A stretch of DNA of 64,000 nt from contig NIVC01000496.1 of the NCBI GenBank assembly GCA_002269645.1, positions 21,164-85,163 on the forward strand. The letters run 5' to 3'. The notes beneath the pieces were generated by a model. The model saw nothing but the letters and a program-made list of their open reading frames with translations, searched no databases and was not told the DNA's origin. Position 1 is the first letter of the stretch. Each line of letters opens with the position of its first letter. Below are positions 6,108-52,148 of this stretch, in pieces. A program made the position numbers and the translations under genes. Source of the stretch: Macrostomum lignano. Its lineage: Eukaryota.

Positions 6108-10976
<4,869 letters not shown>

Positions 10977-11830: not shown

Positions 11831-13897
11831 TCAGTCGAACTCGGCGCCCAGCGCGATGCTCACTTCGCCAGGCTCAACTTCTGTCTCGTGAATCCACTTT
11901 GACGTCTTTAAAGCAACTGAAAACATTGGTGGGAAAATTTAGCCATGAACCTGGAAAACTGTAGCAGCCAACTAAATGTTGTAGCGACTCACTCATGTCC
12001 CCGGGTCTCAGCAAGACTTGATACACATGCTGGCAGGTATAGTAGCAATTCAGAGGCGGCCTCAGGCGCCACCGCTTGCTGCCCTGAATCTGCGCCTGCC
12101 ACGTGTTGTAGTACACTGCGTCGATCTGCGTGGGGTTCAGGTTTTTTACGTTAGTTTTTGTACTTGGTTCGGTTTCTGGACTAGTTGGTTCAGGTTCGGT
12201 TTCTGGACTAGTTGGTTCAGGTTCGGTTTCTGGACTAGTTGGTTCAGGTTCGGTTCCGGGACTAGTTGGTTCAGGTTCGGTTCCGGGACTAGTTGGTTCA
12301 GGTTCGGTTTCTGGACTAGTTGGTTCAGGTTCGGTTTCTGAACTAGTTGGTTCAGGTTCGGTTCCGGGACTAGTTGGTTCAGGTTCGGTTCCGGGACTAG
12401 TTGGTTCAGGTTCGGTTTCTGGACTAGTTGGTTCAGGTTCGGTTTCTGAACTAGTTGGTTCAGGTTCGGTTCCGGGACTAGTTGGTTCAGGTTCGGTTCC
12501 GGGACTAGTTGGTTCAGGTTCGGTTTCTGGACTAGTTGGTTCAGGTTCGGTTTCTGGACTAGTTGGTTCAGGTTCGGTTACGGGACTAGTTGGTTCAGGT
12601 TCGGTTTCTGAACTAGTTGGTTCAGGTTCGGTTCCGGGACTAGTTGGTTCAGGTTCGGTTCCGGGACTAGTTGGTTCAGGTTCGGTTTCTGGACTAGTTG
12701 GTTCAGGTTCGGTTTCTGGACTAGTTGGTTCAGGTTCGGTTTCGGGACTAGTTGGTTCAGGTTCGGTTTCGGGACTAGTTGGTTCGGGTTTATTTCAGGA
12801 CTAGTTGGTTCAGCTTCGGTTTCGTGCTGGCTGGTTCTGGCTTGGTTTGATTTCTGTTTAAAATGCGATATCTGTTCTTTCGAATGCATTAATAAATTTT
12901 GTCAGCTGCACAGAAATAAAAAGCCAAACATTTGAAACTTTCCAAAGTAAATATCGATCGTAATTCCTATCACGGTTGTGTACCTAAGATCAATTTTAGG
13001 CTAAGAAAGGCGTTGAAAATATAATCGCCCTAAAGACTCCAGAATAGCAGGTCTTTGTGCTCACATGGGCTGGCGCGCCCTTGCCGGGTCCGCCGACGAA
13101 AATCCACTCAGTGGCGCCGTGTTCGCTGTCGCTGGCCAGAAATCCCGGCCTTTTGTAGAGCCGCCTCAGCCTCCGAGCAACTCGCTGGTTGCAGACATTC
13201 CTGCAAGCGCGTGTTAGTGGCTGTTTGATGCTGACAATTCTCAAGGCCTGCAGTTAATATGCGAGCACCTTGAAGTGCAAATGCAGTCGTGTCACTCACC
13301 AACCGACGTACCAGGAGTCACGGCTCAGATTTTCCGGCTCCTTGGACCAGCGGAAAAAGTGGCCAAGCGTTGGGAACTGGTTCTTGTAGTCGAACATCTG
13401 GCAGAGCACGCTGGCCCTCCACCGCCGCCCTCTGGGTGGCCTTCGTTGGTCCACCGGCCCCGCCGGGCCTCCCGATAGAGCCGGCGCAGCAGGTCGAGGT
13501 CGAGGCGCCTGGTCACCGCCGGCCAATCCGCTGCGCCACCGCGGATGACAACAGGCACGTTCCGCTCCAGGAACTCCGACCGGAACCGGGCTGGGCTGAT
13601 GGCCTCGGCGCCTGCCTGCAGCTCTGGCAGGCTGGTGAGGTTGGCGCAGTGGCCGCAGTCGGTGTCGGGCTGCAGTAGCATCTGCACCCAACCCGACTGC
13701 GCCGCCAGCAGACAGGGTGCGCTGTACGGGTCGCTGCCGGGGTTCGCCCGCCTCGCCCAGGCGGCCATGGCGGAGTCAAAAAGTTCGGCCGCCCATCCTG
13801 GCGACTCCGGCTCAGGAGGCCAGGCGTGGCGGCCGAACAACAGCAGCAGCAGCAGAGCCAGCAGACCTCCGCCTACCTTTTTGGCAGTACCTGGCAT
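11831..13897 (-). CDS. JmjC/cupin-like domain protein with N-terminal signal or anchor, 4 exons, one apparent frameshift in exon 1
   Basis: Exons 13897-13300, 13200-13065, 12125-11993, 11916-11831. Motifs PVVIRG.A.DWPA, CQMFDYK..F, WYVGW, EWIFVGGPG.GA.AH|IDAV..TWQAQIQGSKRW.L.PP, W.HET, IALGAEFD-stop. The H-x-D...H triad is present. A +1 base is needed near 13410-13435. Confidence 0.85.
12160..12830. repeat. 27-bp minisatellite (~24 copies) in intron 2 of the cupin gene
   Basis: Unit GGACTAGTTGGTTCAGGTTCGGTTTCT; explains ORF 12130..12804 (GLVGSGSVS repeats). Confidence 0.95.
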
Positions 13898-15660: not shown

Positions 15661-18600
15661 ATGCTGCGGATTTTGCTGCTGCTGCTGCCGCTGCTTCTGC
15701 TGCAGCAGCTGCTTGGAGTCAGCGGCCAGGCGCAGGAAGGTGAGGCAATCGGCAAGATTTCCCCCGAGTAAAATCGCTAAAGCTTGCTTAATAATATGAG
15801 AACTTAGAGTTTCTCATCATAGGACAGTATCTCTCACGAGCTCACAGCTTTAAATTAAAATCTGAAACTCTCGAACTAAGTGCCAGAGTCTTGAACTAGC
15901 TCTAACTCTCGAACTAAGTGCCAGAGTCTTGAACTAGCTCTAACTCTCGAACTAAGTGCCAGAGTCTTGAACTAGCTCTAACTCTCGAACTAAGTGCCAG
16001 AGTCTTGAACTAGCTCTAACTCTCGAACTAAGTGCCAGAGTCTTGAACTAGCTCTAACTCTCGAACTAAGTGTCAGAGTCTTGAACTAGCTCTAACTCTC
16101 GAACTAAGTGCCAGAGTCTTGAACTAGCTCTAACTCTCGAACTAAGTGTCAGAGTCTTGAACTAGCTCTAACTCTCGAACTAAGTGCCAGAGTCTTGAAC
16201 TAGCTCTAACTCTCGAACTAAGTGCCAGAGTCTTGAATGGAGGCAACCAGAATCGCAAAGTCTGCGACATCAAAGGTGAAGGTCCTGCTACTTGTCTTCT
16301 TTGATGCAAGGGACATGTGTCAAGCAGTATCTGGTGAACAGCAATGTTACTTTGCTGGAGCAGTTTCCATCCAGGGATTTTTTCCTGAATCTCAGAGAGG
16401 GGGCGCAAAGGAACTCTTTTTCCCAACATAGATCATCAGGAGAGCCACAACGAAGGAACTTTGGAGTGTTCAGACCACATGCACACAGAACTTCTTAAGG
16501 AACGACCTGGGAGAGGTTTATAGAAATTATATGCACTACTTTTTAAACTTTTCAGAGTCCTACACCTTGGTGATCAAGACTGGCAAAACGGGGACCACCA
16601 ACAAGGTTTTCTTCAGCCTTAAGGGCCAGATGGGCGATTCCCCACAGCAGAGCATCAACTTTGATGGCTCCGACAAGCCTATCACGAGCATGTTCACACC
16701 GGGAAAGTGAGTGCCTTCACTGGGCTAGGGGAGCATTCCCAAGAGCACAGCATGTTCACACCGGGAAAGTGAGTGCCTTCACTGGGCTAAGGGAGCATTC
16801 CCAAGAGCACACAGGATGTTCACACCGGGAAAGTGAGCCCAGTTCACTGGGCTAGGGGAGCATTCCCAAGAGCACACAGGATGTTCACACCGGGAAAGTG
16901 AGCCCAGTTCACTGGGCTAGGGGAGCATTCCCAAGAGCACACAGGATGTTCACACCGGGAAAGTGAGAGCCTTCACTGGGTTAGGGGAGCATTTCCCAAG
17001 AGAACATCTGCAACAGTCGCTGCCATTCTCTCTCGCAAGGGTGGATGTCATCGAAGGCAAATTTCGCGGAGCCCTGGGCTACATCAGCACAGTGAAGGTC
17101 AGCCAGGACTCTTACAATGGCTGGGAAATCGAAAGTGTAAGTTGTCTTGCACTCGCTTGTCTGCTTTAAGTAGTTATTTAGGAGTCGCAGTGCTATGCTC
17201 ATACCCTTTGGCCCCTTTGGCCACTGAAAGTGCCAGACTGGCGCGACCGAGTTCAGTTTTTGTTGTCTCTCTCAGTTAACAGCCACCTCATCAGTGGTAT
17301 CGCTGATGTGCAAAGAACAACCGAAATCGGAAGGCCTTAGAATCCTGTTACACCGCGTTTTATGTTTCTGTTAGCGATGCATCATTATGTTTGCTGCAAT
17401 TCCACGTGCCCTCTCAGATTGTGGTCTTCAGTGACACCACCAGGGTGTCCAACAACGAGACCTACATTGTTCGGCAGCCCCAGGACATCAGCTTCAACGG
17501 TGAGCAGCGAATTGTCCTTGCTCCATGCTATGACATTCCCATGACCCATGTGAGCACCGACACTGTGCTTTCCTGCTCCATGCTATGACATTCCCATGAC
17601 CCATGTGAGCACCGACACTGTGCTGTCCTTGCTCCATGCTATGACATTCCCATGACCCATGTGAGCACCGACACTGTGCTTTCCTGCTCCATGCTATGAC
17701 ATTCCCATGACCCATGTGAGCACCGACACTGTGCTGTCCTTGCTCCATGCTATGACATTCTCATGAACCATGTGAGCACTGGAACTGAGCTGCCCTTGCA
17801 CCCTGCTATGACATACCATAACCCAATGACTTACAGTGAACTGCGGCTGGAGCGCCTGGAGCAGCTGGATGACCTGCCAAGGCACCTGCGCCACAGGTGG
17901 GGTCCAGATGCGAATCCGCAACCCGAACAGCCCGCCCAGGATCAACTCTGGCAAAGCGTGCGAGGGCTCCGAGTTCGAGCAGCAGCCCTGCAAACTGGCA
18001 ATGGACTGTCCGGGTAAGACTGGGCTTCGGGTGCTGGGTCCAGTAGCTAGGCATGCAACTGGGTAGCTGGGAATGCAACTGGATAGCTGGACATGCAACT
18101 GGATAGCTGGACATGCAACTGGATAGCTAGACATGCAACTAGGTAGCTGGACATGCAACTGGGTAGCTGGACATGCAACTGGATAGCTGGACATGCAACT
18201 GGATAGCTGGGCATGCAACGGGGTAGCTTGGTAAGTGGTATTTAGTTTGCTTATCCGAGGTATGAAGCGGTGTCAAGAAGCCATATCGGGTATTATTAGG
18301 TCGAGTAAACTCAAGCTCAAACAGTAAACACCTGGCCAGGCCGAAACTTATTGAGGTAAAAATTGAGTCAGAATTTCACTACCAGCATGTACAGAGTCTA
18401 TCGGCCACTCACTCCACCTGTCAATTTTTACACCCCAAATTCCACAGTGAATGGCAACTGGAGCGACTGGTCCCCCTGGAGCGCCTGCAGCGTCAGCTGC
18501 GCCCAAGGCAGCCGCAGCCGCAGCCGCACCTGTACGAACCCGGCGCCCGCAAACGGCGGACTGGACTGTGTCGGCGCCGCCAGCGACACCGGAGTCTGCA

Positions 18601-21600
18601 CCGAGTCGCCCTGCCCCAGTGCGTCCTCAGATCTTACTCTGACTACTCTGAGTCGCTAGCAAATAACTCTGTAACTTGTATTGGAAACTTCTTATTATAT
18701 CTGTCTGGCAGCTCAGACTCTTGTTACCTCATCTGGGATTTCATCTCTGGCAATCACGGAAACCCTGATTTGATCAATCCGTTACTTCGCCGGCTGGCCC
18801 TGTGGGAAATATAGCTTACTATGTTAGACCAGGTGTCGGGTGCCAAAAAGCGGCCAATATTGCAGAAAGATCGACCCCAAGAGCTCCCCAAGCCAGCAGA
18901 TCCGCACCCGCCCCGCAGTCGATGGCCAGTGGGGCAGCTGGTCCCCGTTCTCCGCCTGCAACGCCAGCTGCGGCCCCGGAGTCCAGACCCGAGCTCGCCT
19001 GTGCAACTCGCCAGAGCCGAAGTTCAACGGCAGGAACTGCCAGGGCGACGGAATCGAGCTCAAGACCTGCGAGCTGACTCCATGTCCCAGTGAGTTGGGC
19101 TGGCTTCCATAGCAACCATCACCTACATAAACCTGTTGAGTCACGCTCCCGTAGCATTCACCGCAAAGTCACAGCCTCACAGCCCCATCCGTGCCCCAAC
19201 CCGCTGAGTCCGTGGCGCACTCGAAGTGCTGGGGTGGGCGTTGCGTGCAGCAGCCGGAGTCGGGACGAGGCTTCAGCGCGGCCGTTTCCTCGGCAACTTG
19301 TCGCCAGGAATTGTCCGAGGTAAGGTGCCGAATTTATCTCAGTAAATCTCTGTGTGCATGAATAGGCCTGCTTGAGCTGTGGTTGGATGAAAGCTTTCAA
19401 ATTTATTCAGCGCAAACTCATTTTTACGATTTTTTATAGCGTTAAAAAGACATATAGAATCGCTTCAACACTAAAGCTCGTATTTCACAAATCCTTTCTT
19501 CCATGAGCTGCTGGTCCTCAATGTGGACTGCAGCTCCAGTAGCTCTGGCACAAATCCTCACGCAATTCTGTCCATGAGCTGCTGGTCCTCAATGTGGACT
19601 GCAGCTTCAGTAGCTCTGGCACAAATCCTCACACAATTCTGTCCATGATCTGCTGGCCCTCAATGTGGACTGCAGCTCCAGTAGCTCTGGCACAAATCCT
19701 CACGCAATTCTGTCCATGAGCTGCTGGCCCTCAATGTGGACTGCAGCTTCAGTAGCTCTGGCACAAATCCTCACGCAATTCTGTCCATGATCTGCTGGTC
19801 CTCAATGTGGACTGCAGCTTCAGTAGCTCTGGCACAAATCCTCACGCAATTCTGTCCATGAGCTGCTGGTCCTCAATGTGGACTGCAGCTTCAGTAGCTC
19901 TGGCACAAATCCTCACGCAATTCTGTCCATGAGCTGCTGGCCCTCAATGTGGACTGCAGCTTCAGTAGCTCTGGCACAAATCCTCACGCAATTCTGTCCA
20001 TGATCTGCTGGTCCTCAATGTGGACTGCAGCTTCAGTAGCTCTGGCACAAATCCTCACGCAATTCTGTCCATGAGCTGCTGGCCCTCAATGTGGACTGCA
20101 GCTTCAGTAGCTCTGGCACAAATCCTCACGCAATTCTGTCCATGATCTGCTGGTCCTCAATGTGGACTGCAGCTTCAGTAGCTCTGGCACAAATCCTCAC
20201 GCAATTCTGTCCATGATCTGCTGGCCCTCAATGTGGACTGCAGCTTCAGTAGCTCTGGCACAAATCCTCACGCAATTCTGTCCATGAGCTGCTGGCCCTC
20301 AATGTGGACTGCAGCTTCAGTAGCTCTGGCACAAATCCTCACGCAATTCTGTCCATGAGCTGCTGGCCCTCAATGTGGACTGCAGCTTCAGTAGCTCTGG
20401 CACAAATCCTCACGCAATTCTGTCCATTATCTGCTGGCCCTCAATGTGGACTGCAGCTTCAGTAGCTCTGGCACAAATCCTCACGCTTCACTTTAACAGT
20501 CATAAACAGAGCCGGAACGGCTGCACCAGGCTATGGCAGTCCCAACAAGAACTGCAACCCGACAGCCCGACATTCCAGACCAGCTTTACTTTATTGCTAA
20601 TGGCTGGCGACTGAGATGCCCACTCCAGAGCCGTCTGCATCTCCAGATTCCCTCGCAATCGAACTCACAGGTTCACAAAGTTACACAGTTCTGTGGCATT
20701 CTGTTGGTGCATGGGTGCGTCTGAGAGCAACTCTGCGATTTTAATTTGCATAAATTAAGCCTGGCTGCCACCTCAGATTCAAGAGACAAAATGCCATCTT
20801 GATACCAGATTGCTCTTCGCCATAAGTCAGTGGATCCTCAGCTGATGCCCATCAGTCAGAGGATCCTCAGCTGATGGCCCATCAGTCAGCGGATCCTAAG
20901 CTGATGGCCCATCAGTCAGTGGATCCTAAGCTGTAGGCCCATCAGTCAGCGGATCCTCAGCTGATGGCCCATCAGTCAGCGGATCCTCAGCTGATGGCCC
21001 ATCAGTCAGCGGATCCCAGACAATAGCCAATGAGTTGTTTCCCATATCGCCCAAAGCAAATTCGATGAACATCCCGCAGTCGACGGCGGCTGGTCCAGCT
21101 GGGGCGAGTTCTCCAGCTGCTCGAGCTCGTGCGGCGACGGCATCGAGATTCGAAACCGGCCCTGCACGAACCCGCCTCCCCAGTTCGGCGGGCGGCCTTG
21201 TCCGGGGAGCGCCAACGACTCGAGGTCATGCAATCTCAGGCCATGCCCGAGTGAGTGGCTAGGGGCTTCCCAGCAGTTTAATGGTGGTCGAATATCGGGA
21301 TTTAATAAAAACTGCACGAGAGACCCGCAGAGACTCGAGATGTCCAATCCCGAACCCCTAAACCTTCCAGTTGACGGCCAATGGAGCGAGTGGTCCACCT
21401 TCTCTGGGTGCAGTCGCAGCTGTGGCTCCGGCAAGCAGTGGCGCGGCCGCCAGTGCGCCAGCCCGGTCCCGCAGTTTGGCGGTCTCGACTGCCCCGGCGG
21501 AGCCAACGAGACCCGCGAGTGCAACACCAACCCTTGTCCAGGTGGGTGCTTCGCGTGGAACCAGTTTCCTGATCGAAGACTTAAATCCAGAGAAAGTAGA

Positions 21601-24600
21601 GAGAATCATTCGAGTAAAAGGGTTGACCACGTGTCCATTGGCAAGATAATATGACTTTTAGACTCTCTCAGCAGCCAGCCTCCCTGCATCCGACGCCATT
21701 TTCTTGAACTTCCCTGCAGTGGACGGCGGCTGGTCTGCCTGGTCCGCCTTTGCTGACTGCAGCGTCACCTGCGGCAACGGCAGCCACAGCCGCCAGCGCA
21801 GCTGCAGCAGCCCGGAGCCGCAGTTCGGAGGCCTCAACTGTTCTGGCGAGGCGGTCGAATTCGGCAACTGTAACCCCCGACCTTGCCCGAGTGAGTGACA
21901 GCCGCTGCTCCCCCTGCCAGCCCCACCTGCCCGAGTGAGTGACAGCCGCTGCTCTCCCTGCCAGCCCCACCTGCCCGAGTGAGTGACAGCCGCTGCTCCC
22001 CCTGCCCATCCCCACCTGCCCGAGTGAGTGACAGCCGCTGCTCTCCCTGCCAGCCCCACCTGCCCGAGTGAGTGACAGCCGCTGCTCTCCCTGCCAGCCC
22101 CACCTGCCCGAGTGAGTGACAGCCGCTGCTCTCCCTGCCAGCCCCACCTGCCCGAGTGAGTGACAGCCGCTGCTCTCCCTGCCAGCCCCACCTGCCCGAG
22201 TGAGTGACAGCCGCTGCTCTCCCTGCCCAGCCCCACCTGCCCGAGTGAGTGACAGCCGCTGCTCCCCCTGCCCATCCCCACCCTGCCCGAGTGAGTGACA
22301 GCCGCTGCTCTCCCTGCCCACCCACCCTGCCCGAGTGAGTGACAGCCGCTGCTCCCCCTGCCTATCCTAGCCTTGCCCGAGTGAGACTACCGCTTGTCGG
22401 GGCTCGGGTCTGGCTGCTCACTTCTTCATCGTACAGCTCACCTCCTCACATATTTGACCTTTTAATTAGCTTTCGAATAGACCAGAATTTATTACGAGCA
22501 TTGAGTGCATGGTCCGGATGCGCAGTAATTAATAAGCCGTGGCAGCACTGGACAACCCATGCACTCGCAATGGCAATTAAATCTCAGTGCTTCAAGCCAA
22601 GCCATGCCATGGAACTCTCCCGCAGTTGACGGAGCCTGGACCAGCTGGTCTGACTACTCGGCCTGCTCGCTCACCTGCGGCAGGGGTCGCCAGTGGAGCC
22701 AGCGGAGCTGCAGCGCTCCGGAGCCGCAGTTCGGCGGGAAAAACTGCCCAGGAAACTCCACCCGCGACCGAGCCTGCCTGGTCACTGAGTGCCCCGTGGA
22801 CGGCCTCTGGGGATCCTGGGGCGCCTGGGAGAGCTGCAGCGTCACCTGCGGCAGCGGCACCGCCTGGAGGAGGCGGCACTGCGACTCCCCGGAGCCTCAG
22901 TTTGGCGGCAGCCGCTGCAGTGGTGCAGGCAACGAGAGCACGCCCTGCCATCCGGAGGACTGCCCCAGTGCGTGCTGCCGCATGGTCTTGCTTCCCGTTT
23001 CCCCTGTACTCAGCGCATTTGTGCTTGGGCCATTTTCGCCTATTCCCCGCCCCTGGTTTGTCAATCCAGCTGCACCTTGCAGACGCCGTCACCCGTTCAC
23101 AGTCATCCCGCCGTTTCTTCCATATTATTTTTTTCAATTCTCCGTCATCGCCCGAATTTCAGTAAACGGCGGCTGGTCGCCCTGGTCGGAATTCACCGCC
23201 TGCTCCAGGTCTTGTGGGGGCGGCCAGCGCAGCCGCACTCGGCGGTGCGACTCCCCGCCGCCCCACGCCGGCGGCGCTGACTGCGTTGGCAGCGGAAGTG
23301 ACGTCCAGGACTGCGGCACGGACCCTTGCCCAGGTCTGGCTTGTCTCCTACAAGACTATGCGATATGAGTTATGACCCCGCTGCCAACTATAGCAAGATT
23401 TTCCATCTATATTAAGCTGTTGCGTTTGTGTACGGTTGGGTTGCCAGACAGAAGAATGCCTGCAGGGCCATAGACTTCAGCAGGGGTGTAGCCAGTGAGA
23501 CAAGGGTGCCGCTGATAAAACTCATGTCACCCCTTCGCAACTGATTTGGAGCCCATTCACGTCAGTTGTGGTGTCCCCTACCTGCTGATTTGGCCCCCTC
23601 ACAGAAGGTGAGCCCTTGGTGCCCCTTGATGCTGGCGCCCCCTTGGTGCTAGAGCCCGTTGTTGATGGTGCTTTAGTGTCTCTGGGAGTATCTAATATTT
23701 TGACCGGGTTGAAATTGCTGTCGCCAAACCGATTGAGGTGTATCGTCCTTCCTGTCTCGTTTTTGTTTCTGGTCTGGAAAAAGCGCAAACTTGAAATCAT
23801 GAGATGCTGAAGAGAATTCACAGATGCATTTTTTATATCCGCCCTCACCCCAGTGAACGGAGGCTGGGCGCAGTGGAGCGCCTGGGGCAGCTGCTCCAGG
23901 AGCTGCGGCTCTGGCCTGGTGCAGCGCAGCCGCGGCTGCACCAACCCTGTGCCCGAATTTGGGGGCGACGACTGCGCTGGCGAGGCTGTCCAATCCACCG
24001 CCTGCGACATCCCCGTCTGCCCCGGTGAGGCCCGCCCTGCCCCAAACACCGCCTGCGACATCCCCGTCTGCCCCGGTGAGGCCCGCCCTGCCCCCAAACA
24101 CCGCCTGCGACATCCCCGTCTGCCCCGGTGAGGCCCGCCCTGCCCCCAAACACCGCCTGCGACATCCCCGTCTGCCCCGGTGAGGCCCTCCCTGCTCTCT
24201 ACCGGGTACTGCTCAGGATGACCCCTCAGCTCCCAGCTGACTTTTAAAGCTGATTAATCGGGTCGTCAGGCTGTTTAACGGCTCTGCAGCCCCGACCCAC
24301 GAAGCCTTTCGAGAGTCAAAAAGTCACTGGAATCACAGAAATTCATGAGTTTTTTGTTCCATCTTTTTGTTAACTAGTTTGTTTCTTGATATTCTGTTTG
24401 ACCTTTTCGTTCGCAAAGATTTACCTTTCTGCCAATCTGCCTTAAAAGCGAAGTGTAACTGAGCCGCCTGCCAATTCAATTCCATTCCCAATTCAATTCC
24501 AGTGAACGGAGGCTGGGGGGCATGGGGCCAGTGGGGCGACTGCAGCCTTAGCTGCGGTGGCGGCAACCAGCTGCGCTCTCGTCAGTGCGACTCGCCGAGA

Positions 24601-27600
24601 CCGCAAAACGGCGGAGGAGCCTGCGTTGGCACCGCCAGTGACGGCAGGCAGTGCAACACGGACCCCTGCCCCAGTGAGTGCCCTCGTTTGTCCACACAAA
24701 TTACTCATGTCTTCAGCACCACTCGACTGACTTCGGGCTTTCAACTTAGGGTTTTACCTGAAAGCAAGTCACACAGACATCCGCCCTCTCCGACTGCAGT
24801 TGACGGTGGCTGGTCAGCCTGGAGCGAGTGGTCCGGCTGCTCCACCAGCTGCGGTACCGGCAAGTCGACCAGGCAGCGCGGCTGCTCGAGCCCTGTGCCG
24901 CAGTTTGGTGGCCGGGGCTGCTCAGGCAGCGGCTCAGACATTCGCGACTGCCAACAAGGGCCCTGTCCAGGTGCGTTTCCTTGACCACTGACGTGACTTG
25001 GTCTTTCATGAATATATCTATGTATGAAAATATTGTGGCATGGAATCGCTTCCGATTTTATGTGCTCATCAACAGTGCACGGAGGCTGGAGCGAGTGGAC
25101 CGAGTTCTCGAACTGCTCCGTAACCTGCGGCAATGGAACCCGTAGCCGGAGCCGCAGCTGCAGCAGCCCGGCCCCCCAGTACGGTGGCCGCTTTTGCCTG
25201 CCCTGCACCGCAAACCTTACCTATCCGGAGTCTGCCGACAACGCCTCTGTCTCTTTGGCAACTGTTGTCAAGGACTACGTGAGCGTTGAGGACAATTGCT
25301 CCTACAAGGGAAACTACTATGAGGTGGACGGCGATCTCATAATTTGGGACGATGACGTTCAGTACGCGAACTGCAGCATGGAGCCCTGCATATGTGAGTC
25401 ACCCCATCGTAGGTCCTTTGGTCTCCCTATAAATTAGCGATTGCACATTTACTTCGTACCTCAACCCTCTCAATACGCAGCGACCCTTGCTGACAAGGCC
25501 AACAGTTTCGTTGACGAATTCCTCAAAGGCCTGAACAACTCAGGGACCAACAAATCCGTAAGTGCAGGAGAGCCCCTAGTTGCAATTTCGCTCAATTACT
25601 TTGCACCTATTTTGTAATTGCGGCTGCATCTTCTCTCTACGCTGGCCCGCAGGACTCGGAGTCCATGAAGGCCGCACAGGAGATGGTGAACAAGATTACA
25701 AACCTGTTGGCAGATCAGCTGAAGAACGCGGAGGTGGGTAAGCCTGTGATGATCGACGCCAAGGGCGTCTCCGTCGGCGTGTCGAAGGTGAACTCGTCCA
25801 ACATGGCGGGCTCCGAGATGAAGTCCGGTGACAAGGGCGGCATCGTGCTGGGCGACGCAGAAGATACCGGGGTCGAGGGCCAGGACGCCAGTCTGAAGTT
25901 CTCAGCCCTGGACCCAAAGACCTTCTTCCCGGGCGCCGACAAGAAGGACCAGTCCGCGGCAGTTGTTTCCCTCAACCTGGCCCAGGGAACTGAAGTGAGT
26001 TGGGCTTTTCCCGGCCATCAGTGCTGAGCCAGAACCCAAAATGTCTCCTGGAAATCTGATTCATTTCATTATGGCAATTGATTTTAGGTGGTGAAGCCAA
26101 GCAACGCCTCAAAGGTGTCGCTAACGCTATCGCTGCCCAACCAGAACCAGGAGACCACCGAGAACCTGCTGCAGCCGGTGGCCATGAAGCGTGGCAAGCG
26201 GATGGTGCAGAAGTTCACGTTCGAGGCGGCGAACACTGCCATCAAGGTATGAGCAGCAGCGAGCCTCACTGCATTGTCTGAAAAATCGTGCTGTGAGACA
26301 GTGCGCAGAAAAGTTAACTGAGCTCCGATGAAGAAATGAAGAAAAAACCGATAGCCGGGATGCATTAGCGGGACCTTTCAATGAATTTGTCGCCCCGCCC
26401 CTCAGGCGTCACTGGAGCTGCCATCTTCGGACTCCTACCTGATGATGTTCCGAGGCGGCGTCCCGGCCAACTTCAGCAAGCAGGCGAACTTTACGGCTTG
26501 GGTGCACTCCAACGAAACCATGAAGATCGAGACGGACGGCAGCCTGGAGGTCCGGCTGAAGTTCGACACCGCCTTGGCGGCTGCTCGGCGGCGACGGCGA
26601 CGCGAGACAGCCTCGCCGGAGAAGCCGCTGACGCTGAGCGTGTTCATCCCCGGTGGCCAGATGGCGGCGGGCAGCGCCGTTTTCATGTCGCTGGAGCTCG
26701 CGGACAACGGGACGGCGGCGGCAGCCTCCGGCAGCAACGTGACGACGGAGTCGGCCAACATGAGCCTGACGGTGGGGGTGGCGTCCATTACGCCGAGGGC
26801 GTGGAGCGACCTGCTGGGAGGCTGGGTGGACACGGACGCAGAGGTGGCGGAGGAGTCCAGCATCGAAAAGATGGTGTTCAAGAGCAACTTCTTCGGCTCG
26901 TACTCGGGCAAGATGTTCATCGCGCCCAACACCATCAATTTTGCCACCGTTTTCAACAACTTCGCGGGCAAGCTGGCTGAGAACTTTGTCACGCTGTTGG
27001 TGCTGTGTCTCATCATAGGCATCTACGTGGTCGTCTCCGTCTGGATGTGGCGACTGGACCGACAGGAGGCTGCCAATGTAAGTGCCAGCAGGCTGGGACT
27101 ACGGCAAATTTGGATTACTTGCCACTGGGTCTCCGCATGTATAGGCCTTATTAGGCAGTGTCGGTGTTACGTTGAACATATGTGGTACAGTCACACAGTA
27201 TAAATTCCCTTAAGCTGTGCACAAAGGCTGCCTGAGCAATAATAAAGATCTAAGGATGATTTGGATTGCCAGAGTGAGCTAAGGGGACAGTGGCTAAGTG
27301 TTCTATTAACATATTTATTTGAGAGTTAACGCAAGCGCTAGTTCCTCTGAGATGGAAGAGTTTTGTTTTTACTGCAAGATTTATACTTTTTATTTCGAGG
27401 CTATGAGCTAAGTAGCCGATCTTTGTACACACTGCATGCTTCAACAAATGGAATGATTGGCACAGCATGCGGTCTCAACCCAATCCACTCACTCAGCTGC
27501 GGTATGAGCCCCTGGAGGACAACGAGTTCGACAATGACTACACCTTCATCATCAGCGTGTACACCGGGGACGAGTCCGGCGCCGACACCACCTCGAATGT

Positions 27601-30600
27601 GTTCATCAACCTTGCGGGCACCTGGGGCTCTTCTGGCAAGCGCCAGCTGTCTGACGGAGTGCGCCAGAACTTCTCCCGCGGCTCCGTCTGCAACTTCGCA
27701 ATGACCACCAGGGCTCCTCTCGGCGAGTTGCGCGGCCTGAAGGTCTGGCACGACAACAGCGGCAAAAAGCCGGGCTGGTTCCTGGAGAAGATACTCATCG
27801 AGGACCTGCAGACCAAGAAGAAGTGAGTTTCTTCTTGTCTTTCTTCCTGTCTAGCTCGTGTTCAGCATGTCCGCCCTTTTGCCGCTTGGCTGGTTTGTTG
27901 CTTTTACATGTAACACTGTGTGGTGGCTTTCAAACTGGATCATCGTTTCAGATGTATCTGTATATGCTCATATTAGTCATGAGTCTCTCCTCGGAACACT
28001 GCGATTCCGGTGGAGGTTCATAGATTCGAGGAATGCACAGGAACCCACTAAATGCCCACGAATTTCACTATTTCAGGAAACTTCACATCTTTAAAATGCT
28101 GGCCTATTTTCATAACTCTTAATTCTGGGCATATCAGGGTGTAAAGAAAGCAAAATTAGGGATAGAATTAGGGATAGAAGGTGGAAATTTTATTTGAATA
28201 GTACAAAGCCTAGCGATTTTTGCGCCTTCCACTAAGTTCATTGCTAAGTCTACGACAATGCGAAACATTTAGCCAATTTAGCACAAGACGTTCAATGTGC
28301 TACACAGTCTGAATCTGCAAATTCCTTGCCCAAACTCACCTGCAGCTATGTCTTCATGTGCGATCAGTGGCTGGCTGAAAACAAGTTTGACAGCCGTACC
28401 ATGCGGGTGCTGCCCGAGGTGAAGCAGGACCAGCGCTTCCAGGAGATGATGCTGCGGTACAAGGCGGGCGGGGTGGTCAACAAGCACGTGATCACGGCGC
28501 TTTTCCGCAAGACCGGCCAGTCTAACTACTCCCGGCTGCAGCGCACAGGTGTGGCCAACGCCATGTTCTTCCTCACAATGGTGTGCAATGCCATGTGGTA
28601 CGGCAAGGGAGACGACCTGGATGCCGAGGCTAACTTCAGCATCGACCTCGGCCCGATTTCGGTCACCTGGTTCCAGCTGTACTCTGGCATTCTCTCCATG
28701 GCCATCACCTACCCCTGCATCTTCGCGGCGGCTGAAATCTTCCGCCGAACAAAGAAATGGCAGCGTCGCTGGAGCGAGGACGATGTGGAGAGCAAGAAGA
28801 AGGAAATTCGGCTGCCCAAGGGCTTCCTGGTCATCGGCTGGGGCCTCCTGCTCCTGGGCGTAGGGCTGAGTTTCTTCTTCACCTTCCTTTACAGCATCGA
28901 ATGGGGCAAGGAAAAGGCCAACGGCTGGCTCAAGAGCTTCTTCCTGGGAATCCTGCAGTTGGTGGTGGTCACAGATCCCATCTGCCTGCTTATCGTGTTC
29001 GTCGTGGCCAAGAAGATCTTCGGCCAGAAAGAGTCGGAGGAAAACGTCTTCGAGCTGGATGATCTCATTAATGATGATCTCAAGCAGGTGAGGAGCCGAA
29101 ACGATATGTTAATTGGTGGTAGTTATAGATAATTTAGTTCCGTATCTCTATTCTTGTAGCTATCTTTGAAAAGCTACAGCAATAAATGCTATTTTGATGT
29201 ATCTTCCTTCATGCGGCATTTGTCTGTCCTCGCTCCGATCACAACAGTTGCTGCCATCTAAATGGTGCTTCCACAACTCATGCCACACCTTACACACTTT
29301 CAGGTCCTGGATGGCACTGAATACGCTCCCCCGGACCCGACTCGGATGGAGGAAATCCGAGCTGAGCGCCGAAACAACCAGAAGATGTCGCAGACATTCA
29401 CGGACGTGATGTCCTATGTGGTGTACATGTTCCTCCTCGTCGCTCTGGCTTACGACTCACGTGACCAGGTCAGCTTCCGCCAGAACCAAAACTTAAAAGA
29501 CCAATTCCTCACGGCCGCGCCAACCCGGTTCAATGACTTTAAGCACGTTTTCGACTGGCTGAATGGCAGCATCGTGCCCAGACTGTACCGAACCACCGAA
29601 TACAACGGCGAACCACTCACTGGAGACCTCAAAGATGCGATCGACACGTGTGACTGCATCAAGCAGGGACCATTCAGGCTGAGGCAGCTGAGGGTCAATC
29701 CACGTGAGTCTAGGCTTTCCTAGTTGAAAATATTTGGGACTTATAGGATCCACTGCTTCTGGGGTTGCCACTGGATGGATTTAGCAGGTGGCTGCAGCAA
29801 CCAGCCCTATCTCCCACAGGCAAGTGCCCGGTAACGTGGCCGTTCAAGGCGTACCCCCAGAAATCGTGGATCTGCTCATCGGACTTCTCTCCCCAAGCGG
29901 CGGACCAGGCGGTTTACCGTCCGCTGTGGCTGCCCGACAGCAACGGCTGGGTGCGGAATGCGTCATTGCAAATGCGGGCAAAGTCGCAGATCAAGCGAAT
30001 GCGGCCGGATGAAATCGTTCTACAAGCCTTTTGGTACCGTAGCGCTGACTCCATGATGAGCTTCCCGTTCGAGGGCGCCTTCACAACCTACCCGGGTGAT
30101 GGCTATGCAGCCACGCTCGGGCTCAACAGTGCTGAGGCCATGTGAGTCCCAAACTCAAACGCTCACGCTGCTGAACGCTGTAGTTTTGTGAAAAGTGGCG
30201 GTGTGAAAAACTTGCAAAAAAGAAGCATATTCTCCCTGGTTTGAAGCGAAATGCATACAAACGCCTTAAAACTTTTTTCGTTTTTTTCCTATCGTGGACC
30301 CACAGGTGGATCATCAACCGGCTGCGGGCCACCAACTGGTTGGACGAGAAGACTCGAGCCATGTTCCTGGAGGGCACGGTGTACAACGCCAACACCAACC
30401 TGTTCACCACCATACAGATCCTGTTGGAGTTCCCGGCCGCAGGCGGAATTCTCACCTACAAGAACGGAGTCCGCACCTACCGCCTGTACAACTACACCGG
30501 CGGCAAAGGCATCATCCTCATGGCCATGCAGGGCCTGTTCGCCCTCATCTGCCTGTACCAGATCTATCGGGAGACGCGCAGCCTTCTCACGCTACGACTC

Positions 30601-33600
30601 AAGTACTTCGATGACCTGTGGAACAAGATCGAGTTCGTTAACATCCTGCTGTGCATCACAATCATGATCACGTACGGCATCCGCATCAAAATCACCATCG
30701 ACTCCATCGAGCTGATGATGAACAATAGGGGTGAGGGGCGGTGCTCGATTTAGTGAATTTGTTGTGAATTCTATTCCTGGCTGCGTGGCGTTTAAAATTT
30801 TTGTTTTGCTAGGCGGAAAAACACGCTGTTGTCACAATAACTCAACAGAAGTTCTAAAACAGCACAATTCCATCCCTTCAGCATGCTGTTGTTTCCCTGC
30901 GTCCCTTCAGTCCTCAGTTTAAGTTGTTGCCGTGTTTAATACACTAGTGCTTGGGAAAAAATGCTGGAGAACAACAGACAGCTGTATTAATTCCCTTTCC
31001 CACAGGAATGTACGTGGCTTTCGACAACGTTATTGAGTGGGTAGAGGCAACATGCGTGGCCATGGCTCTAAGTGTGTTCCTCACGATCTTCCGGGTGCTG
31101 AAGTTCTTGGGCTTCAACAAGCACATCGCCATCCTGCTCGCCACCGTGAAGCAGTGCGCCCGCCAGTTGTCCTCGTTCGGCGTCGCCTTCGTGCTGATCA
31201 TGGCGGCCTTCCTGTCGGCTGGCACGATCCTGTTCTCGTTCACCGAGGCCAGCTTTGCCTCCGTGCTGTCCAGCTGCCGTTCGCTCTTCACCACCGCACT
31301 CGGCATTCAGGGTTACACGCAGATCTTCGTCAACAGCCAGGGCACGACTGCCAGCCTCATCTTTTTTGGCGGCTGGTCTTGCCTGGCGGTCTTTTTTCTG
31401 GTGTCAGTCTTCGTGTCCATCCTCACAGACACCTACAGCGTCGTGGTCAGCGACGGCCTCTATAGCTACGATGAGGAGTTTGTCAACCACATGTGGAGCA
31501 AGTGAGCAAAGTGGTCAAGTGCACCTACTCCCGAATGTGTTAAGTGTAGTTGGTAGGAACTGGTCTTCGAAGAGTTTTGGAGCACATGGAATGTTGTATG
31601 CTGGTGGTGTTCATGGATTAGTCCGGTCCATGTGTTAGTGTGCTATGCACTGGTCTGGCGTATTTGCGTGCCAATCTGTTGGGGCTTTAACTACATACTT
31701 GCAGCATGTGTCGCTAGGCTAACCAGCCTTGATCATTCATTTACCTCATATTGGAATCCAAAATGCACTATGCTGCAAAATCATGCTTTCGAAACTACAG
31801 ATTCATGGGTACTATGGCCAGCATTACGTCAAAGAAGGACGAGCTGGGCGAGGCGCTGCAGAAGAGTGTCAGCGCTGTCAAGCGTCGAATGGGTGAGCCT
31901 AAGTTCAAGGATCAGATACATAACAATCCGTTGCTTTCACTGCTGCTAATTTCTTTTCGCAGTGACGGAGGACGACATCGAGATTCAGCTTAATGAGGAC
32001 CGGCGCCAGGAGTCCGTTGGCGGGGCCGAGGAGAGCTCTGGCGGCAAAAAGGCAAAAGACAGTAAGCCTTGCTCAGTTCTTGGAGCCGGAGACTACTCGT
32101 ATTTATGGATGTACTAATTAGACATAGCTCGTAAAAGTATCTCCAGCACAGCATGTTAAAAGTTCGCGTTTGCGGGTTCGCTCAAATTAGCAAGTATCCA
32201 CAGAATGACACGTGCAAACATATAAAAAGTGCTCTCGAACATAAAGAGCATGTAACCCTACATCTCCCCTTCTCCCCTGGCCCGCAGTCAACCCGGGCTC
32301 AAGATGAAGCTAGCGGTGGTAAACAGGGACAAGCCGGAGACCGGAGAAAGCTACGTCTGGACGCCCAAAGAGACGGGAGATGAGGTGCTCGTTGACGCCG
32401 GTGAGCTGAGCGCCGTTGCCACAGAGGACGCGGAGCCGGGCTGGATCCCCAGGTTCAAGTCAACCGCACTGGACTTGCAGCCGCCAGGACTTGACGACAG
32501 CGGGGCGTCGGCTTTCCGCTTTGACCCGCTGGGCGACAGCGCCAGGTCCGGCCTGCACCTTCTGTGTGTGTGTGTATTAACCTACGGCTCGGGTCCCAGC
32601 CCGCCGAGGAAGGTCGACTCCAGGAAGGTGGACGTCTCAATTGGGTTGTTCCAAAGGTCACTAGGGCAGAGCGGCGTCGGATAGACAGGGCAGTCGAAAA
32701 GATGGACCACCGTTTGGGGCTCCAGACCGCAATCAGGACAGACCGCGGCGACGCCTGGTTTGATTCTCGACTGAAAATCTTGGAGAAGCGGGCAGAAACC
32801 GGAGCGGAGCTGCGCCAGTATGCACCGCATGCGGCGGGGGAGGCAAGTTTCGGAGCGATGGATCGCTGGCCGTTGTGTTTGAATAACACGGTTCTGTGGC
32901 AGGCTGTCCAGCATGGCCTGTACTGCCTGCGTATGCTGGGCCCGCCTGGCGCGATCCCAGGCAGCAGCGTCAAGGACGTCCGGGGCCGGAACCGGCGTCC
33001 AATCAGCATTAAAGTGTTCAGCCGTGAAGATGGAGGCTTTCATGAGTCTGCGCGGCGGCGGAAGGCCAGAAAGGTGGTGACAAGGGAGTTCAGGGCGTCT
33101 AGCGCGAAGCTTGAACTGGAGCGAAAGAAGTCGGTTGTGCTGGCGGACGGTAAGCAACTGGACTTCACTATGAAGATCCGCTTCAGAGGTAAGGGCAGTG
33201 CAGCCGGTGATGCCGCGAATCGCTGCATTCTGGACCGATTGCAGCCGCGTCCAGGACGAGTTGGAGATGATAGGGCCCCAGACCGGAGCAGCATAGTCGA
33301 GCAGGCTTCTGCCTAACGCTTTGAAGGTGGTCAGCAAAAGTTCCTTGCAGCAGCCCCAGGAGGAGCCGGCGAGACAGCGTAGCAGGCAGTTCCTTTTCCG
33401 GGTTTTTTCCGCAAGAGTGGTAACGTGTCTAGCGAAGGAGAGCTTAGGGTCGAAAGTCACACCAAGAATTTTCGGATAGAGGGCTTGCGGTAGTAATGAG
33501 CCGTTGATGGACACGTTCAGTTGACGAGAGTACTCGCGCTGATCCGGACTGAACAGAGTGGAGGAGCACTTTGATGTAGAAATTTGGAGCTTGCGCGACT

Positions 33601-36928: not shown

Positions 36929-43836
<6,908 letters not shown>

Positions 43837-45008: not shown

Positions 45009-46297
45009 CCATTTGGAAGCCAAAGGCCTGCACTGCAGGCCATACCGAAACGGCTCAAAAACCCAGAGATTGAAAAATGTCTATGGCATGAAAAACCATC
45101 TCCCAGTCACTAAAGCAAGTGCCCAGTATGGCCTGCTGTGCAGGTCATGATTAATTTAAAGAAGCCCTGCATTATGCATTTCCGTTATGTTTTCACTCAA
45201 ATGTTAAATGTGAAATAAGCGTGCACAGTGAAAACATGAGGTGATGCACAAATTTATGGTCGTATTAAATTTTAATCTCCTCACTACTGACCTACGAGTA
45301 TTAGTATTAGTATTAGTATAGTATTAGTATTAGTATAACTAGTTTTAAACAAATACAAAATTTAACTGCATGGTTCCAAACAAAACCCCCTGCTCTGGTC
45401 GATAGGTTTCGCGACAAATTCGGCTAATCAAGTCCAGAAAAGGCCTTACTTTGCACAGTGGGTCGTTGATATCGAACTCTCGGCAGTCGTAGCACCGGAA
45501 GTAGGCCAGTAGCTGAAGAAATCGCCAACGGGGAAGGCTCTCGGCTTGCTGAAAGTATGGATTCCGATACATGACGTCTGTGGACCAGTAGTGGCGTATG
45601 GTCGGCTTGCTGTTGATGCCCATGAAGAACACCATGCCCAGAAACTTTTTCATCTCGGCCACACAGCATGGTTTAAGAGCAGACAGTCCAGCAGGCAACT
45701 CTTCCTCGCCAGTTTCTGCACTCTCCTGCTGAAACTCCCTGACTGACAACCAAATTCTCTCATTGGTCCATGTGACAAGACTGGTGAGAAACTCTTCAGT
45801 CAGGAAGATTGATAAAAATTCCGCCATACTTTCGTCTGGATTTTCTGGCAGATCGATGCTTGGATTGATGGTCGAAAACCCTCGGAATTCCGGCACCCGG
45901 TCGTGGTCAAACGAGTTGTCACTTCCAGGGGCTACTTCAACCCATTCCGCGGCCGCCTCATCTTGGCTCTGATCAGTTTCTGGATCCATGCTTTCCGACT
46001 CCGTTTCTGACTCAAAAACCGTCGACTCATCGCTTGATAAAGCGTCATCCGAATCGGAATCGAGTCCCAGTCTGCGCAAGGCATCACTTTTAGCTGTCCT
46101 TTTCGGGCGCGTAGAAGCCATTTGTGAGTAGGAAGGTTTGAACAGGAGCTAGCAGAAAAACTCTGTGGTATACTTTACTTCTGGGCTTTTAGGGTGTGCA
46201 CTCGATTCAGAAAAAAAGACAAATTTGTCTATGGACTGCTCTGCAGGCCTTTGGGCTTTTAAGCGATCTTACAGAACCAAGCTTGGGCGCGAAGTGG
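45009..46297 (-). mobile_element. Internally deleted piggyBac element with N-terminal transposase ORF (46121-45345)
   Basis: TTAA on both flanks (45005-45008, 46298-46301); imperfect CCA(T/C)TT ends; subterminal inverted match CCAAAGGCCTGCA / TGCAGGCCTTTGG. ORF has an acidic N-terminus, EMKKFLG..F.MGI..KP.I..YWS.D, RF..L and DPL.KVRPFLD, and stops before the catalytic DDD region. Confidence 0.85.
45296..45337. repeat. (TAGTAT)n microsatellite near the piggyBac deletion point
   Basis: Directly visible. Confidence 0.85.
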
Positions 46298-47376
46298 TTA
46301 ATCAGAAATAACTCAGAAACAAATTGAACCGCGTTTGCAAAATGCTTTCTTTATTTGCTAAGCACTGTTGCTCTGCTCAAATAGAAAATATTTAGATAAC
46401 ATATGAGCTAAATTGCTATAGGCTGGGTGTTCATCACAATAGAATTTGATAATATGCTACTGCAGGTGAAAGGGGAAGGAGGATTGGCTAGTGCATCGCA
46501 GGTCTGCACTGAAACTAAAATGGCGCACTTGACGGTATCATTTTTGAGAGTGCTTGAAGTCGGAGATGAAAGAGGATAAGATAATGGGAGGCAATTTATC
46601 TGTCTGCTCACATCGAGTCCCCTGCGCATCGCATTAACTGCAGGCACAGCTCAATCACACCACCTTGACCGCAGCTGACTTTGAGGACGCCAACAGCCTC
46701 GGCTGCTCTGGCCCGGACCGACCTACTCAAACTATATGCTGACTCTGCTACTCAATACAAATGACACAATGGGACGATCACAGCAGTGTTCTAATCTCAT
46801 GGCTAACGATCATGAATCGCACAATAATATTCTCAGTAATTGTGCAGGCAAGTATACGTCGTAGTATTAGATGATGGCCAGCAGCGACGCCGAAGTGGAA
46901 CATTCATCAATTCATTTTTTAGCTACAGCATGCATGGTTTTGCATTGGAGAAGCTTCGAGTAATCGAACGAATCAAATGCTTTCAGTACCAAACTTCGCT
47001 CCAGTGCTTTGATTTGAAAGCTGACTGCCCGTGGTAAACGGCTGGATTACAGCCAGGGCGGCCAACACTCACCGCATACGAGAATATTCTCTGAGCCAAC
47101 CCGCTGCAAAGCTGAAAATGCAACGATGAAATCGAAAGCTTTCTTAAAGGTACGCGTATCACTGAACCATTTTGTGAGCAATAGAGGTGAGGGGCGCTGA
47201 TGATAACAGGTGGGAGATGCCTTTGGCAGTCGGCCCGTTCTATGGAGTAATAATTTGCGTTAGGAATAATAGAGGCTTGGAGTGCAGCGATTAATCAGGA
47301 AAAGAATACTATATGCCAGACTGGCAGCGATTATGCGTGAGACAAATGGGATTAGAGCGAGGTTCCGCAGATGTGG

Positions 47377-52108: not shown

Positions 52109-52148
<40 letters not shown>

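Follow-up and report, generated by a model that had tools for sequence, protein, structure and literature searches.

Gene structure and domain order

The DNA analyzed here (hereafter the window) comprises 64,000 nucleotides of Macrostomum lignano contig NIVC01000496.1 (GCA_002269645.1), and all coordinates are window positions. Chaining of open frames via scored donor and acceptor sites yielded a PKD1-like gene of 28 exons on the + strand (15661..32117) with a single uninterrupted open reading frame (ORF) of 2,330 amino acids (aa). All of its introns are GT-AG, exon phases are consistent, and the region is eukaryotic in character, with short GT-AG introns and minisatellites in many of them. 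We consider it probable that the locus is an intact M. lignano ortholog of planarian pkd1L-2, encoding an 11-transmembrane (11-TM) PKD1L receptor or channel subunit for which a mechanosensory role is proposed. A previous interpretation made from the letters alone (the sequence-only reading) had placed a polycystin-1-like protein at 15661-27077. Both boundaries correspond to real features of the gene: 15661 is the ATG opening a leucine-rich signal peptide, and 27077 is the final base of exon 20, just past TM1, followed by the donor GTAAGT. That span covers the ectodomain and TM1, and the gene extends another 5 kb, to 32117.

From the N terminus, the protein is composed of a signal peptide, a PLAT-like domain, 13 TSP1 repeats, a Cys-containing linker, a GAIN-like domain, TM1, a cytoplasmic PLAT domain, TM2 to TM6, a Polycystin (TOP) domain and a channel module of the six-TM type. 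Pfam searches of the spliced protein identified an N-terminal PLAT domain (aa 29-114, 28.1 bits against a cutoff of 23, E = 3.7 × 10−6), 13 stretches of TSP_1 (aa 137-~865, 449 bits, E = 6 × 10−138), the cytoplasmic PLAT domain (aa 1364-1467, 66 bits), Polycystin_dom (aa 1777-2002, 120 bits) and PKD_channel (aa 2012-2229, 86 bits). At E ≤ 1, aa ~870-1345 had no Pfam match, and the spliced protein had none to REJ, PKD, Lectin_C, LRR, WSC or GPS. These domain calls are not chance matches, because the scores far exceed curated cutoffs and an independent database protein has the same exon structure. The profile analysis thereby upheld the order PLAT, 13 TSP1 repeats, GAIN-like domain, TM1, PLAT and PKD channel put forward by the sequence-only reading, as well as its claim of a polycystin-1-like protein whose ectodomain has no REJ or PKD repeats.

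Exon 21 (27497..27822) encodes the cytoplasmic PLAT domain, located in the first intracellular loop, and exon 22 (28346..29087) its end together with TM2-TM5 (PDB match and hydropathy). TM6 and the start of the Polycystin domain lie in exon 23 (29304..29703; Pfam and hydropathy); the domain continues through exon 24 (29820..30141; Pfam), which includes a run of five cytosines at 29854-29858, and ends in exon 25 (30306..30730), where TM7 and TM8 follow (Pfam and hydropathy). Exon 26 (31006..31501) carries TM9-TM11 and the pore loop (Pfam, alignment to PKD2 and PKD2L1, and hydropathy). The cytoplasmic tail is encoded by exon 27 (31801..31892), a less certain part of the gene model, and by exon 28 (31963..32117), which includes the stop codon and is the least certain exon, with a GT at ~32061 as a possible alternative donor. 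Hydropathy analysis identified the signal peptide (peak at aa 2-20), TM1 and ten further hydrophobic segments, one of them weak (TM2), which fits an 11-TM topology. A PDB sequence search matched polycystin-1 (6a70_B, PLAT plus TM region, E = 5 × 10−38), PKD2L1 (E = 2 × 10−39) and PKD2 (E = 1 × 10−32), and the channel module aligns with S1-S6 of PKD2 and PKD2L1. In the pore loop (31296-31316), LGI occupies the position of the LGD selectivity filter of PKD2 and PKD2L1, with isoleucine in place of the acidic residue. The protein thus has the PLAT/LH2 domain in the loop after TM1, the 11 TM segments of which the last six form a TRPP-type module (Polycystin_dom and PKD_channel) and the GAIN domain directly before TM1 that characterize the PKD1L family; the REJ module was not found in the ectodomain by Pfam at E ≤ 1, and several close relatives likewise have no REJ.

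The start codon and signal peptide are contained in exon 1 (15661..15739), which ends in phase 1 and is supported by hydropathy and by the same start in a deposited M. lignano protein, BOX15_Mlig015709g1. Exons 2-4 encode the N-terminal PLAT-like domain (aa 27-137), with its first part in exon 2 (16556..16706), its middle in exon 3 (17040..17136) and its end in exon 4 (17418..17499); Pfam supports all three exons and hhalign the first two. A profile of this domain (M. lignano plus the planarian homolog) aligned by hhalign with 80 PLAT domains at 96% (E = 2 × 10−9, 86 columns), compared with <0.5% for five shuffled controls, and a custom hidden Markov model (HMM) built from PLAT domains matched aa 28-118 (E = 3 × 10−6). 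The domain contains no cysteines and one N-glycosylation sequon. With a score above the curated Pfam threshold for PLAT/LH2, a sequence criterion, it is very probably a PLAT domain, as had been proposed for exons 2-4; because it follows a signal peptide and directly adjoins disulfide-rich repeats, we infer that it is extracellular. The proposal that PLAT occurs on both sides of the membrane is accordingly sound as to the two domains by sequence, and likely as to the outer position of the N-terminal copy.

The 13 TSP1 repeats occupy 12 exons, all of phase 1-1; ten of these are 171 nt long, another contains two repeats, and the final one bears a Cys-containing extension. Repeat 1 (exon 5, 17837..18013) is divergent, with WSAWSSW and six cysteines, and is supported by Pfam, as are repeat 2 (exon 6, 18448..18618) and repeat 3 (exon 7, 18919..19089). 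Supported by the gene model are repeats 4 (exon 8, 21080..21250), 5 (exon 9, 21371..21541) and 6 (exon 10, 21720..21890), repeats 7 and 8 together (exon 11, 22626..22967), and repeats 9 (exon 12, 23163..23333), 10 (exon 13, 23854..24024), 11 (exon 14, 24503..24673) and 12 (exon 15, 24800..24970). Repeat 13, truncated after the fourth Cys region, shares exon 16 (25076..25393) with a Cys-containing linker that has no Pfam match. As ~55-aa units with WxxW, CSxTCG, RxR and six cysteines, the repeats are TSP1 by definition: WxxW occurs in 13 of 13, CxxS/TCG in 11, RxRxC in 12 and six cysteines in 12 (repeat 13 has five), a tally that agrees with the 13 units bearing WSxW, CSxTCG and RxRxC counted previously. 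Pairwise identity among units is 35-59%, and the array is therefore old rather than a recent amplification.

Introns of the gene carry minisatellites at 15866-16237, 16690-17006, 17513-17825, 18044-18228, 19496-20486, 20820-21016, 21876-22385 and 23996-24195, and the 1,990-nt intron before exon 8 holds 71-bp (14 copies) and 30-bp (6.6 copies) arrays. Three of them (16690-17006, 21876-22385 and 23996-24195) start within the upstream exon, of which they duplicate the final 15-29 nt plus the GT donor, resulting in 4-11 tandem copies of a 5′ splice site; the unit of a 44-bp minisatellite also ends in CAG. A duplicated second donor of exon 13, at 24075, is in frame and would add 17 aa, and BOX15_Mlig015709g1 uses the donor at 24024.

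Between the TSP1 array and TM1, exon 17 (25481..25557) encodes the start of a helical part preceding the GAIN-like domain (helices in an AlphaFold2 [AF2] model), exon 18 (25653..25994) a second helix followed by beta strands (hhalign at 99.9%, AF2 and Foldseek), and exon 19 (26088..26246) the beta part (hhalign and AF2). Exon 20 (26406..27077) holds the end of the domain, a degenerate GPS equivalent (26874-26903), the sequence PNTINF and TM1 (26985-27041). When the 430 residues before TM1 from ten proteins bearing the FKSNFFG motif were compared by hhalign with 38 canonical proteins, the match was 99.9% (E = 9 × 10−32, 329 columns). In one canonical relative, the homologous region is situated between Pfam REJ and TM1, with REJ N-terminal of it, and it therefore represents the GAIN domain proper. 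An AF2 model from the ten-sequence alignment (pLDDT 59, pTM 0.56) has two long helices followed by ~20 strands, and its top Foldseek matches in the PDB were the GAIN domains of BAI2 (uncleaved state), BAI3 and latrophilin (probability 0.99-1.0). At E ≤ 0.001, three of four matches were BAI2 or BAI3 GAIN domains and the fourth was a GH43 enzyme (probability 0.30); the latrophilin GAIN domain ranked sixth. No significant match came from a PDB sequence search with the GAIN-like region. A GAIN-homologous domain is present, then, and REJ is absent.

Position for position, the ~90 residues preceding TM1 can be aligned with the GPS region of canonical PKD1-like proteins. At the GPS position, M. lignano has FKSNFFG where 48 relatives have C.C.HL[TS].F, and the two upstream GPS cysteines are also lost, which leaves none of the four GPS cysteines and no HL|T site; the GAIN-like region contains no cysteine, and Pfam finds no GPS. 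The GAIN domain claimed by the sequence-only reading is hence homologous to that of canonical PKD1-like proteins and differs from it in having lost these residues. Replacement of C.C.HL|T by FKSNFFG suggests that GPS autoproteolysis has probably been lost. Some accepted members of the PKD1L family are also uncleaved, and the missing GPS chemistry is therefore no bar to membership. The same replacement of C.C.HL|T.F by FKSNFFGSF, with loss of the GPS cysteines, was observed across a spiralian PKD1L clade (flatworm, brachiopod, annelid and molluscs) and suggests a conserved, non-cleaving GAIN domain; no mention of this Cys-less form was found in the papers searched.

Relatives, transcript evidence and neighboring sequence

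To find relatives, aa 930-1848 were queried by exhaustive HMMER search against 1.84 billion representative sequences, which gave 4,525 hits, of which the 150 best formed the census; many of these were multi-PLAT (LOXHD1-like) proteins that match the PLAT segment only and were set aside. A word-indexed homolog search was insensitive, recovering M. lignano entries, a few mammalian PKD1L2 and two metagenome fragments but missing the planarian ortholog. A metagenome contig begins inside a TM exon and is therefore uninformative on the ectodomain of a third species. The closest relative is PKD1L-2 of Schmidtea mediterranea (GenBank AKN21725.1, UniProt A0A0H3YFF8, gene pkd1L-2, dd_Smed_v6_13975_0_1), which aligns with the entire query in a single stretch at 43% identity and scores 714 bits, the next PKD1-like protein scoring 389 bits. 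AKN21725.1 has four TSP1 repeats (aa 142-355), followed by PLAT, Polycystin_dom and PKD_channel, and residues 1-124 can be aligned with the N-terminal domain of the M. lignano protein (28% identity, E = 5 × 10−11). In a neighbor-joining tree of 86 PKD1-like TM regions, a phylogeny that had been suggested as a check, all 100 bootstraps pair the two flatworm proteins as sisters, and the pair groups with spiralian proteins from Owenia, Lingula and molluscs that share the Cys-less GPS. By sequence, then, closest relative, shared derived architecture and sister position all point to orthology with planarian pkd1L-2.

Among 88 PKD1-like relatives sampled, TSP1 repeats occur only in the flatworm proteins, and a PLAT match before the GPS only in the M. 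lignano protein and three frog entries. The latter, annotated as Pelobates cultripes “PKD1L3”, have two GPS-PLAT units in series and look like fused tandem PKD1-like genes. As TSP1 is confined to flatworm proteins and clade neighbors carry PAN or C-type lectin modules, the ectodomain appears, within this sample, to be a flatworm-specific rebuild in a family known for shuffled ectodomains, which agrees with the lineage-specific origin proposed before. No description of an ectodomain that combines PKD1 with TSP1 repeats was found in searchable literature, and the 2024 paper on planarian PKD genes contains no mention of TSP or thrombospondin in its text or supplements (PMC11448475). In supplementary file 2 of that paper, Smed-PKD1L-2 begins at an internal Met within TSP1 repeat 3 (MQRSRLCNNPAPS...), so that the published ORF is missing the signal peptide, the domain at the N terminus and the majority of the TSP1 repeats, all of which are present in AKN21725.1. 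The record for planarian pkd1L-2 is corrected accordingly: its published domain scheme drew on an N-terminally truncated ORF.

The M. lignano protein itself is already deposited. With the C-terminal 1,400 aa of the model as the query, a 100%-identical match was found to BOX15_Mlig015709g1 (1,912 aa), which carries Pfam labels for TSP_1 and PLAT and is named “hypothetical protein” in GenBank/UniProt or “PLAT domain-containing protein”; it equals the model over aa 1-1847 save for six substitutions. The layout is thus in databases, in this protein and in the planarian gene, whose deposited protein likewise bears TSP_1 and PLAT labels, and TSP1 is absent from the other relatives sampled. Because the protein was deposited with these labels and its layout is shared with planarian PKD1L-2, the gene counts as a member of a known family with a variant, flatworm-type ectodomain rather than as a new entity. 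GenBank annotation of M. lignano derives from RNA sequencing (RNA-seq) transcript assemblies with TransDecoder ORFs and not from ab initio prediction (PMC5730564). Since BOX15_Mlig015709g1 is transcript derived in this sense, it counts as transcript evidence, and the PLAT exons, TSP1 exons and membrane part belong to one mRNA. The sequence-only reading had named TSP1 exons on a separate transcript as what would overturn it; the RNA-seq-derived protein and the planarian ortholog both show a single mRNA instead. BOX15_Mlig015709g1 is frameshifted from aa 1848 and lacks Polycystin_dom and PKD_channel because one base is missing, the homopolymer at 29854-29858 being C5 in the window and, by implication, C4 in the copy behind the deposited protein. 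The difference is probably either an assembly indel or the mark of a damaged duplicate copy, and the intact copy in the window supplies the missing channel module.

Elsewhere in the window, an upstream gene at 6108-7382 (+) has a serine/threonine protein kinase domain (Pfam Pkinase, 176 bits) that by eye resembles AMPK/SNF1 and is followed at ~7.0-8.7 kb by long tandem repeats open in several frames. About 470 bp past the stop of the PKD1-like gene, on the opposite strand, a 901-aa open frame (32585-35287, −; RVT_1, 104 bits) is probably a non-LTR (long terminal repeat) retrotransposon. Other elements of the window, at 37798-38268 (−), 40707-42155 (+), 45348-46148 (−) and 51168-52553 (−), are an exon of a Ras/Rab-family GTPase, degenerate LTR-retrotransposon pol fragments (RVT_1 and RT_RNaseH), a piggyBac-type transposase fragment (DDE_Tnp_1_7) and a SYDE-type RhoGAP gene (C2_SYDE and RhoGAP). 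Large tandem-repeat blocks with strong strand composition bias occur at 54087-56369 (both strands), 47295-47941, 11877-12801, 10260-10973 and 37210-38073; they are open in several frames and could pass for coding sequence, and GC skew reaches 0.57 in the block at 54-56 kb.

Proposed role and alternative explanations

PKD1-like and PKD2-like subunits form tetramers in a 1:3 ratio (PDB 6A70, 7D7E), and in alpha-toxin and secreted lipases the PLAT fold serves to bind surfaces of lipid or protein. Expression of planarian pkd1L-2 is all but confined to ciliated neurons in the rheosensory organ; the gene is dependent on soxB1-2 and pou4-2 and coexpressed with pkd2L-1 and pkd2-4, and its knockdown by RNA interference (RNAi) reduces mechanosensory behavior (PMC11448475, PMC12626421). 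In sexual animals, signal was also seen around the copulatory apparatus and oviduct (PMC11448475). By analogy with this function and the 1:3 architecture of PKD1-like and PKD2-like subunits, the M. lignano gene most likely encodes the PKD1-like subunit of a ciliary mechanosensory channel. It would be expressed in ciliated mechanosensory (rheosensory) neurons, as extrapolated from the ortholog, would assemble with PKD2-like subunits, as expected from the ortholog and from polycystin biology, and would, again judging from the ortholog, be needed to turn water flow or vibration into cation entry. Of the two roles offered by the sequence-only reading, adhesion or mechanosensory channel subunit, the mechanosensory one fits the neurons and RNAi phenotype of planarian pkd1L-2, and nothing supports adhesion or the adhesive organ.

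The anatomy of the ectodomain suggests how such a subunit might work. A GPS that cannot self-cleave would keep ectodomain and channel covalently linked, the 13 TSP1 units, which are rod-like, could form a long stalk of ~60 nm (at ~5 nm each), and the PLAT-like domain at its tip is a plausible surface-binding end. An uncleaved GAIN domain, a long TSP1 stalk and a PLAT-like tip together would suit a tether or a ligand-catching antenna that passes force or binding to the channel, and not a shed subunit or a tethered-agonist switch. A more specific version is a self-tethered mechanosensor, in which the uncleavable GAIN domain holds the ~60-nm stalk on the channel, the PLAT tip anchors to a lipid or matrix surface (candidates being neighboring microvilli, the ciliary membrane or a cuticle-like matrix), and deflection of the cilium pulls on the channel. 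We regard this version as doubtful; if true, it would amount to a one-polypeptide analog of a tip link or of the Reissner fiber/PKD2L1 pair.

Could the model instead have merged two adjacent genes, one for a secreted PLAT-TSP1 matrix protein and one for a PKD1-like channel, perhaps from a polycistronic, trans-spliced pre-mRNA, of which M. lignano has many? Precursor mRNAs encoding at least two proteins make up roughly 7% of the assembled transcripts of M. lignano (PMC5730564), which lends this some plausibility; yet no stop breaks the frame in any of the 28 exons, whose phases are consistent, exon 16 and the linker are common to TSP1-13 and the GAIN-like region with no stop or start between them, and planarian PKD1L-2, independently derived, has the same contiguous order in one ORF. 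A GAIN-like domain moreover needs an N-terminal secretory signal, for which exon 1 is the sole supplier, and a merger of genes is already largely refuted and extremely improbable. Duplication raises a different concern, that the locus is a decaying, non-functional copy in a partly duplicated genome, given that the copy behind BOX15_Mlig015709g1 loses its frame in exon 24 and is without the channel module, and that the M. lignano DV1 assembly holds 180 Mb of duplicated blocks (PMC5730564). The copy in the window, however, is intact from ATG to stop with canonical splice sites throughout, a single-base C5/C4 homopolymer difference is typical of long-read assembly error, and the two copies differ at only 6 amino acids per 1,847 residues, which makes decay very unlikely.

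Other alternatives concern the identity of the N-terminal domain and the role of the protein. That the domain is an unrelated small beta sandwich that happens to score weakly as PLAT, in which case the idea of a PLAT domain on either side of the membrane would fail, is consistent with a Pfam score 5 bits over the cutoff that covers profile positions 1-89 of 117, with an uninformative AF2 model, with a PDB sequence search in which the two-sequence N-terminal profile found nothing significant, and with a planarian homolog that by itself is unrecognized as PLAT. We nevertheless judge it unlikely, as Pfam (above the gathering score) and hhalign concur independently while shuffled sequences stay low, the custom PLAT HMM agrees, and the PLAT hallmarks Y-x-V-x-V-x-T-G...G-T, L-x-G...G, F-x-x-G, L-G-x-[IL]-x-x-[IV]-x-[IV] and W are matched. 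Quite unlikely is a protein whose principal role is that of an adhesion or matrix receptor (in adhesive organs or the reproductive tract, say) and not one in mechanosensory neurons, with the channel part secondary. TSP1 arrays are typical of matrix and adhesion proteins, and the planarian signal around the copulatory apparatus and oviduct (PMC11448475) would accord with such a role, but planarian pkd1L-2 has its most discrete expression in ciliated rheosensory neurons and a sensory phenotype under RNAi, good conservation of the channel module is evident from PKD_channel at 86 bits and from alignment with PKD2 and PKD2L1, and a literature search found no tie between the gene and adhesive glands.

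Several observations weigh against an intact, mechanosensory pkd1L-2 ortholog with the domain assignments given above. Function is carried over from an ortholog of 43% identity that has 4 TSP1 repeats, not 13, the tether idea is drawn from anatomy, and loss of cleavage is deduced from loss of the motif. The N-terminal PLAT call has a modest score, a single-sequence AF2 model of this domain with TSP1-1 was unusable (pLDDT 40), and the planarian N terminus alone falls short of PLAT (hhalign at 28%, and no second Pfam PLAT stretch). Foldseek TM-scores of the GAIN-like model were low (0.21-0.28), and assignment of the fold therefore leans on ranking and sequence profiles. Exons 27-28 are without homolog support, and the identifier BOX15_Mlig015709g1 was not found in searchable literature.

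How polycystin complexes sense mechanical stimuli, and what their large ectodomains do, is still debated. The lineage described here, with a clear sensory phenotype in planarians, stands out for a TSP1-built ectodomain, a PLAT-like cap and a GAIN domain without cleavage chemistry, and it allows a cleaner distinction than vertebrate PKD1 does between a permanently attached tether and a shed subunit or tethered agonist. The 13 versus 4 TSP1 repeats of the two flatworms constitute a natural length variant, and M. lignano is amenable to transgenesis and RNAi, so domain deletions are testable in vivo. Should none of this bear out, the locus would be a well-annotated member of a known family.

Comparison with known systems

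The most similar protein, S. mediterranea PKD1L-2, shares with that of M. lignano the signal peptide, a homologous N-terminal domain, TSP1 repeats, a Cys-less GAIN-like domain with FKSNF[FL]G, TM1, PLAT, Polycystin_dom and PKD_channel, with 39% identity over 1,689 aligned positions. It differs in its 4 TSP1 repeats against 13, in an N-terminal domain that has drifted below detection by PLAT profiles, and in having been studied functionally, in rheosensation. Members of the spiralian clade with the Cys-less GPS (Lingula, Owenia, Argopecten, Ylistrum and Haliotis; annotated as PKD1L2, PKD1L3 or REJ-like) likewise carry FKSNFFGSF and group with the flatworm proteins in the TM tree, but their ectodomains contain PAN (Owenia), C-type lectin (one Lingula protein) or no detected module, and none has TSP1 repeats or an N-terminal PLAT match.

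With the vertebrate polycystin-1 family (PKD1, PKD1L1-3 and PKDREJ; 6A70, 7D7E), the M. lignano protein has in common a GAIN domain before TM1, PLAT in the first cytoplasmic loop, 11 TM segments, the TOP/Polycystin domain and a PKD2-like channel module, and mammalian PKD1L2 is its best vertebrate match (29-31% identity). In contrast to that family, it is without REJ, PKD, LRR, WSC and lectin modules and without the four GPS cysteines and HL|T, and its ectodomain is made up of TSP1 repeats and a PLAT-like cap. TSP1 repeats upstream of a GAIN domain are shared with BAI/ADGRB, as is the GAIN-like fold itself in so far as BAI2 and BAI3 GAIN domains were the best structural matches of the model; however, the M. 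lignano protein has neither HormR nor a secretin-type 7TM region, and its membrane part is an 11-TM polycystin. Membership in BAI/ADGRB was rejected on the lack of any Pfam HRM or 7tm_2 match and on the polycystin membrane part, and the likeness is one of ectodomain design.

More distant parallels are found in systems in which a polycystin works with a long extracellular glycoprotein. SCO-spondin, the protein of the Reissner fiber, is rich in TSP1 repeats. Published accounts pair the Reissner fiber with PKD2L1 in vertebrate cerebrospinal fluid-contacting neurons, so that a long glycoprotein outside the cell works with a polycystin of a sensory cell that is ciliated or microvillar, and Chlamydomonas PKD2 is a polycystin channel that works with the glycoprotein of mastigonemes. 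The filament is a separate protein in both systems, whereas in M. lignano the TSP1 array lies within the PKD1-like subunit itself, and the likeness to either would be a functional analogy only.

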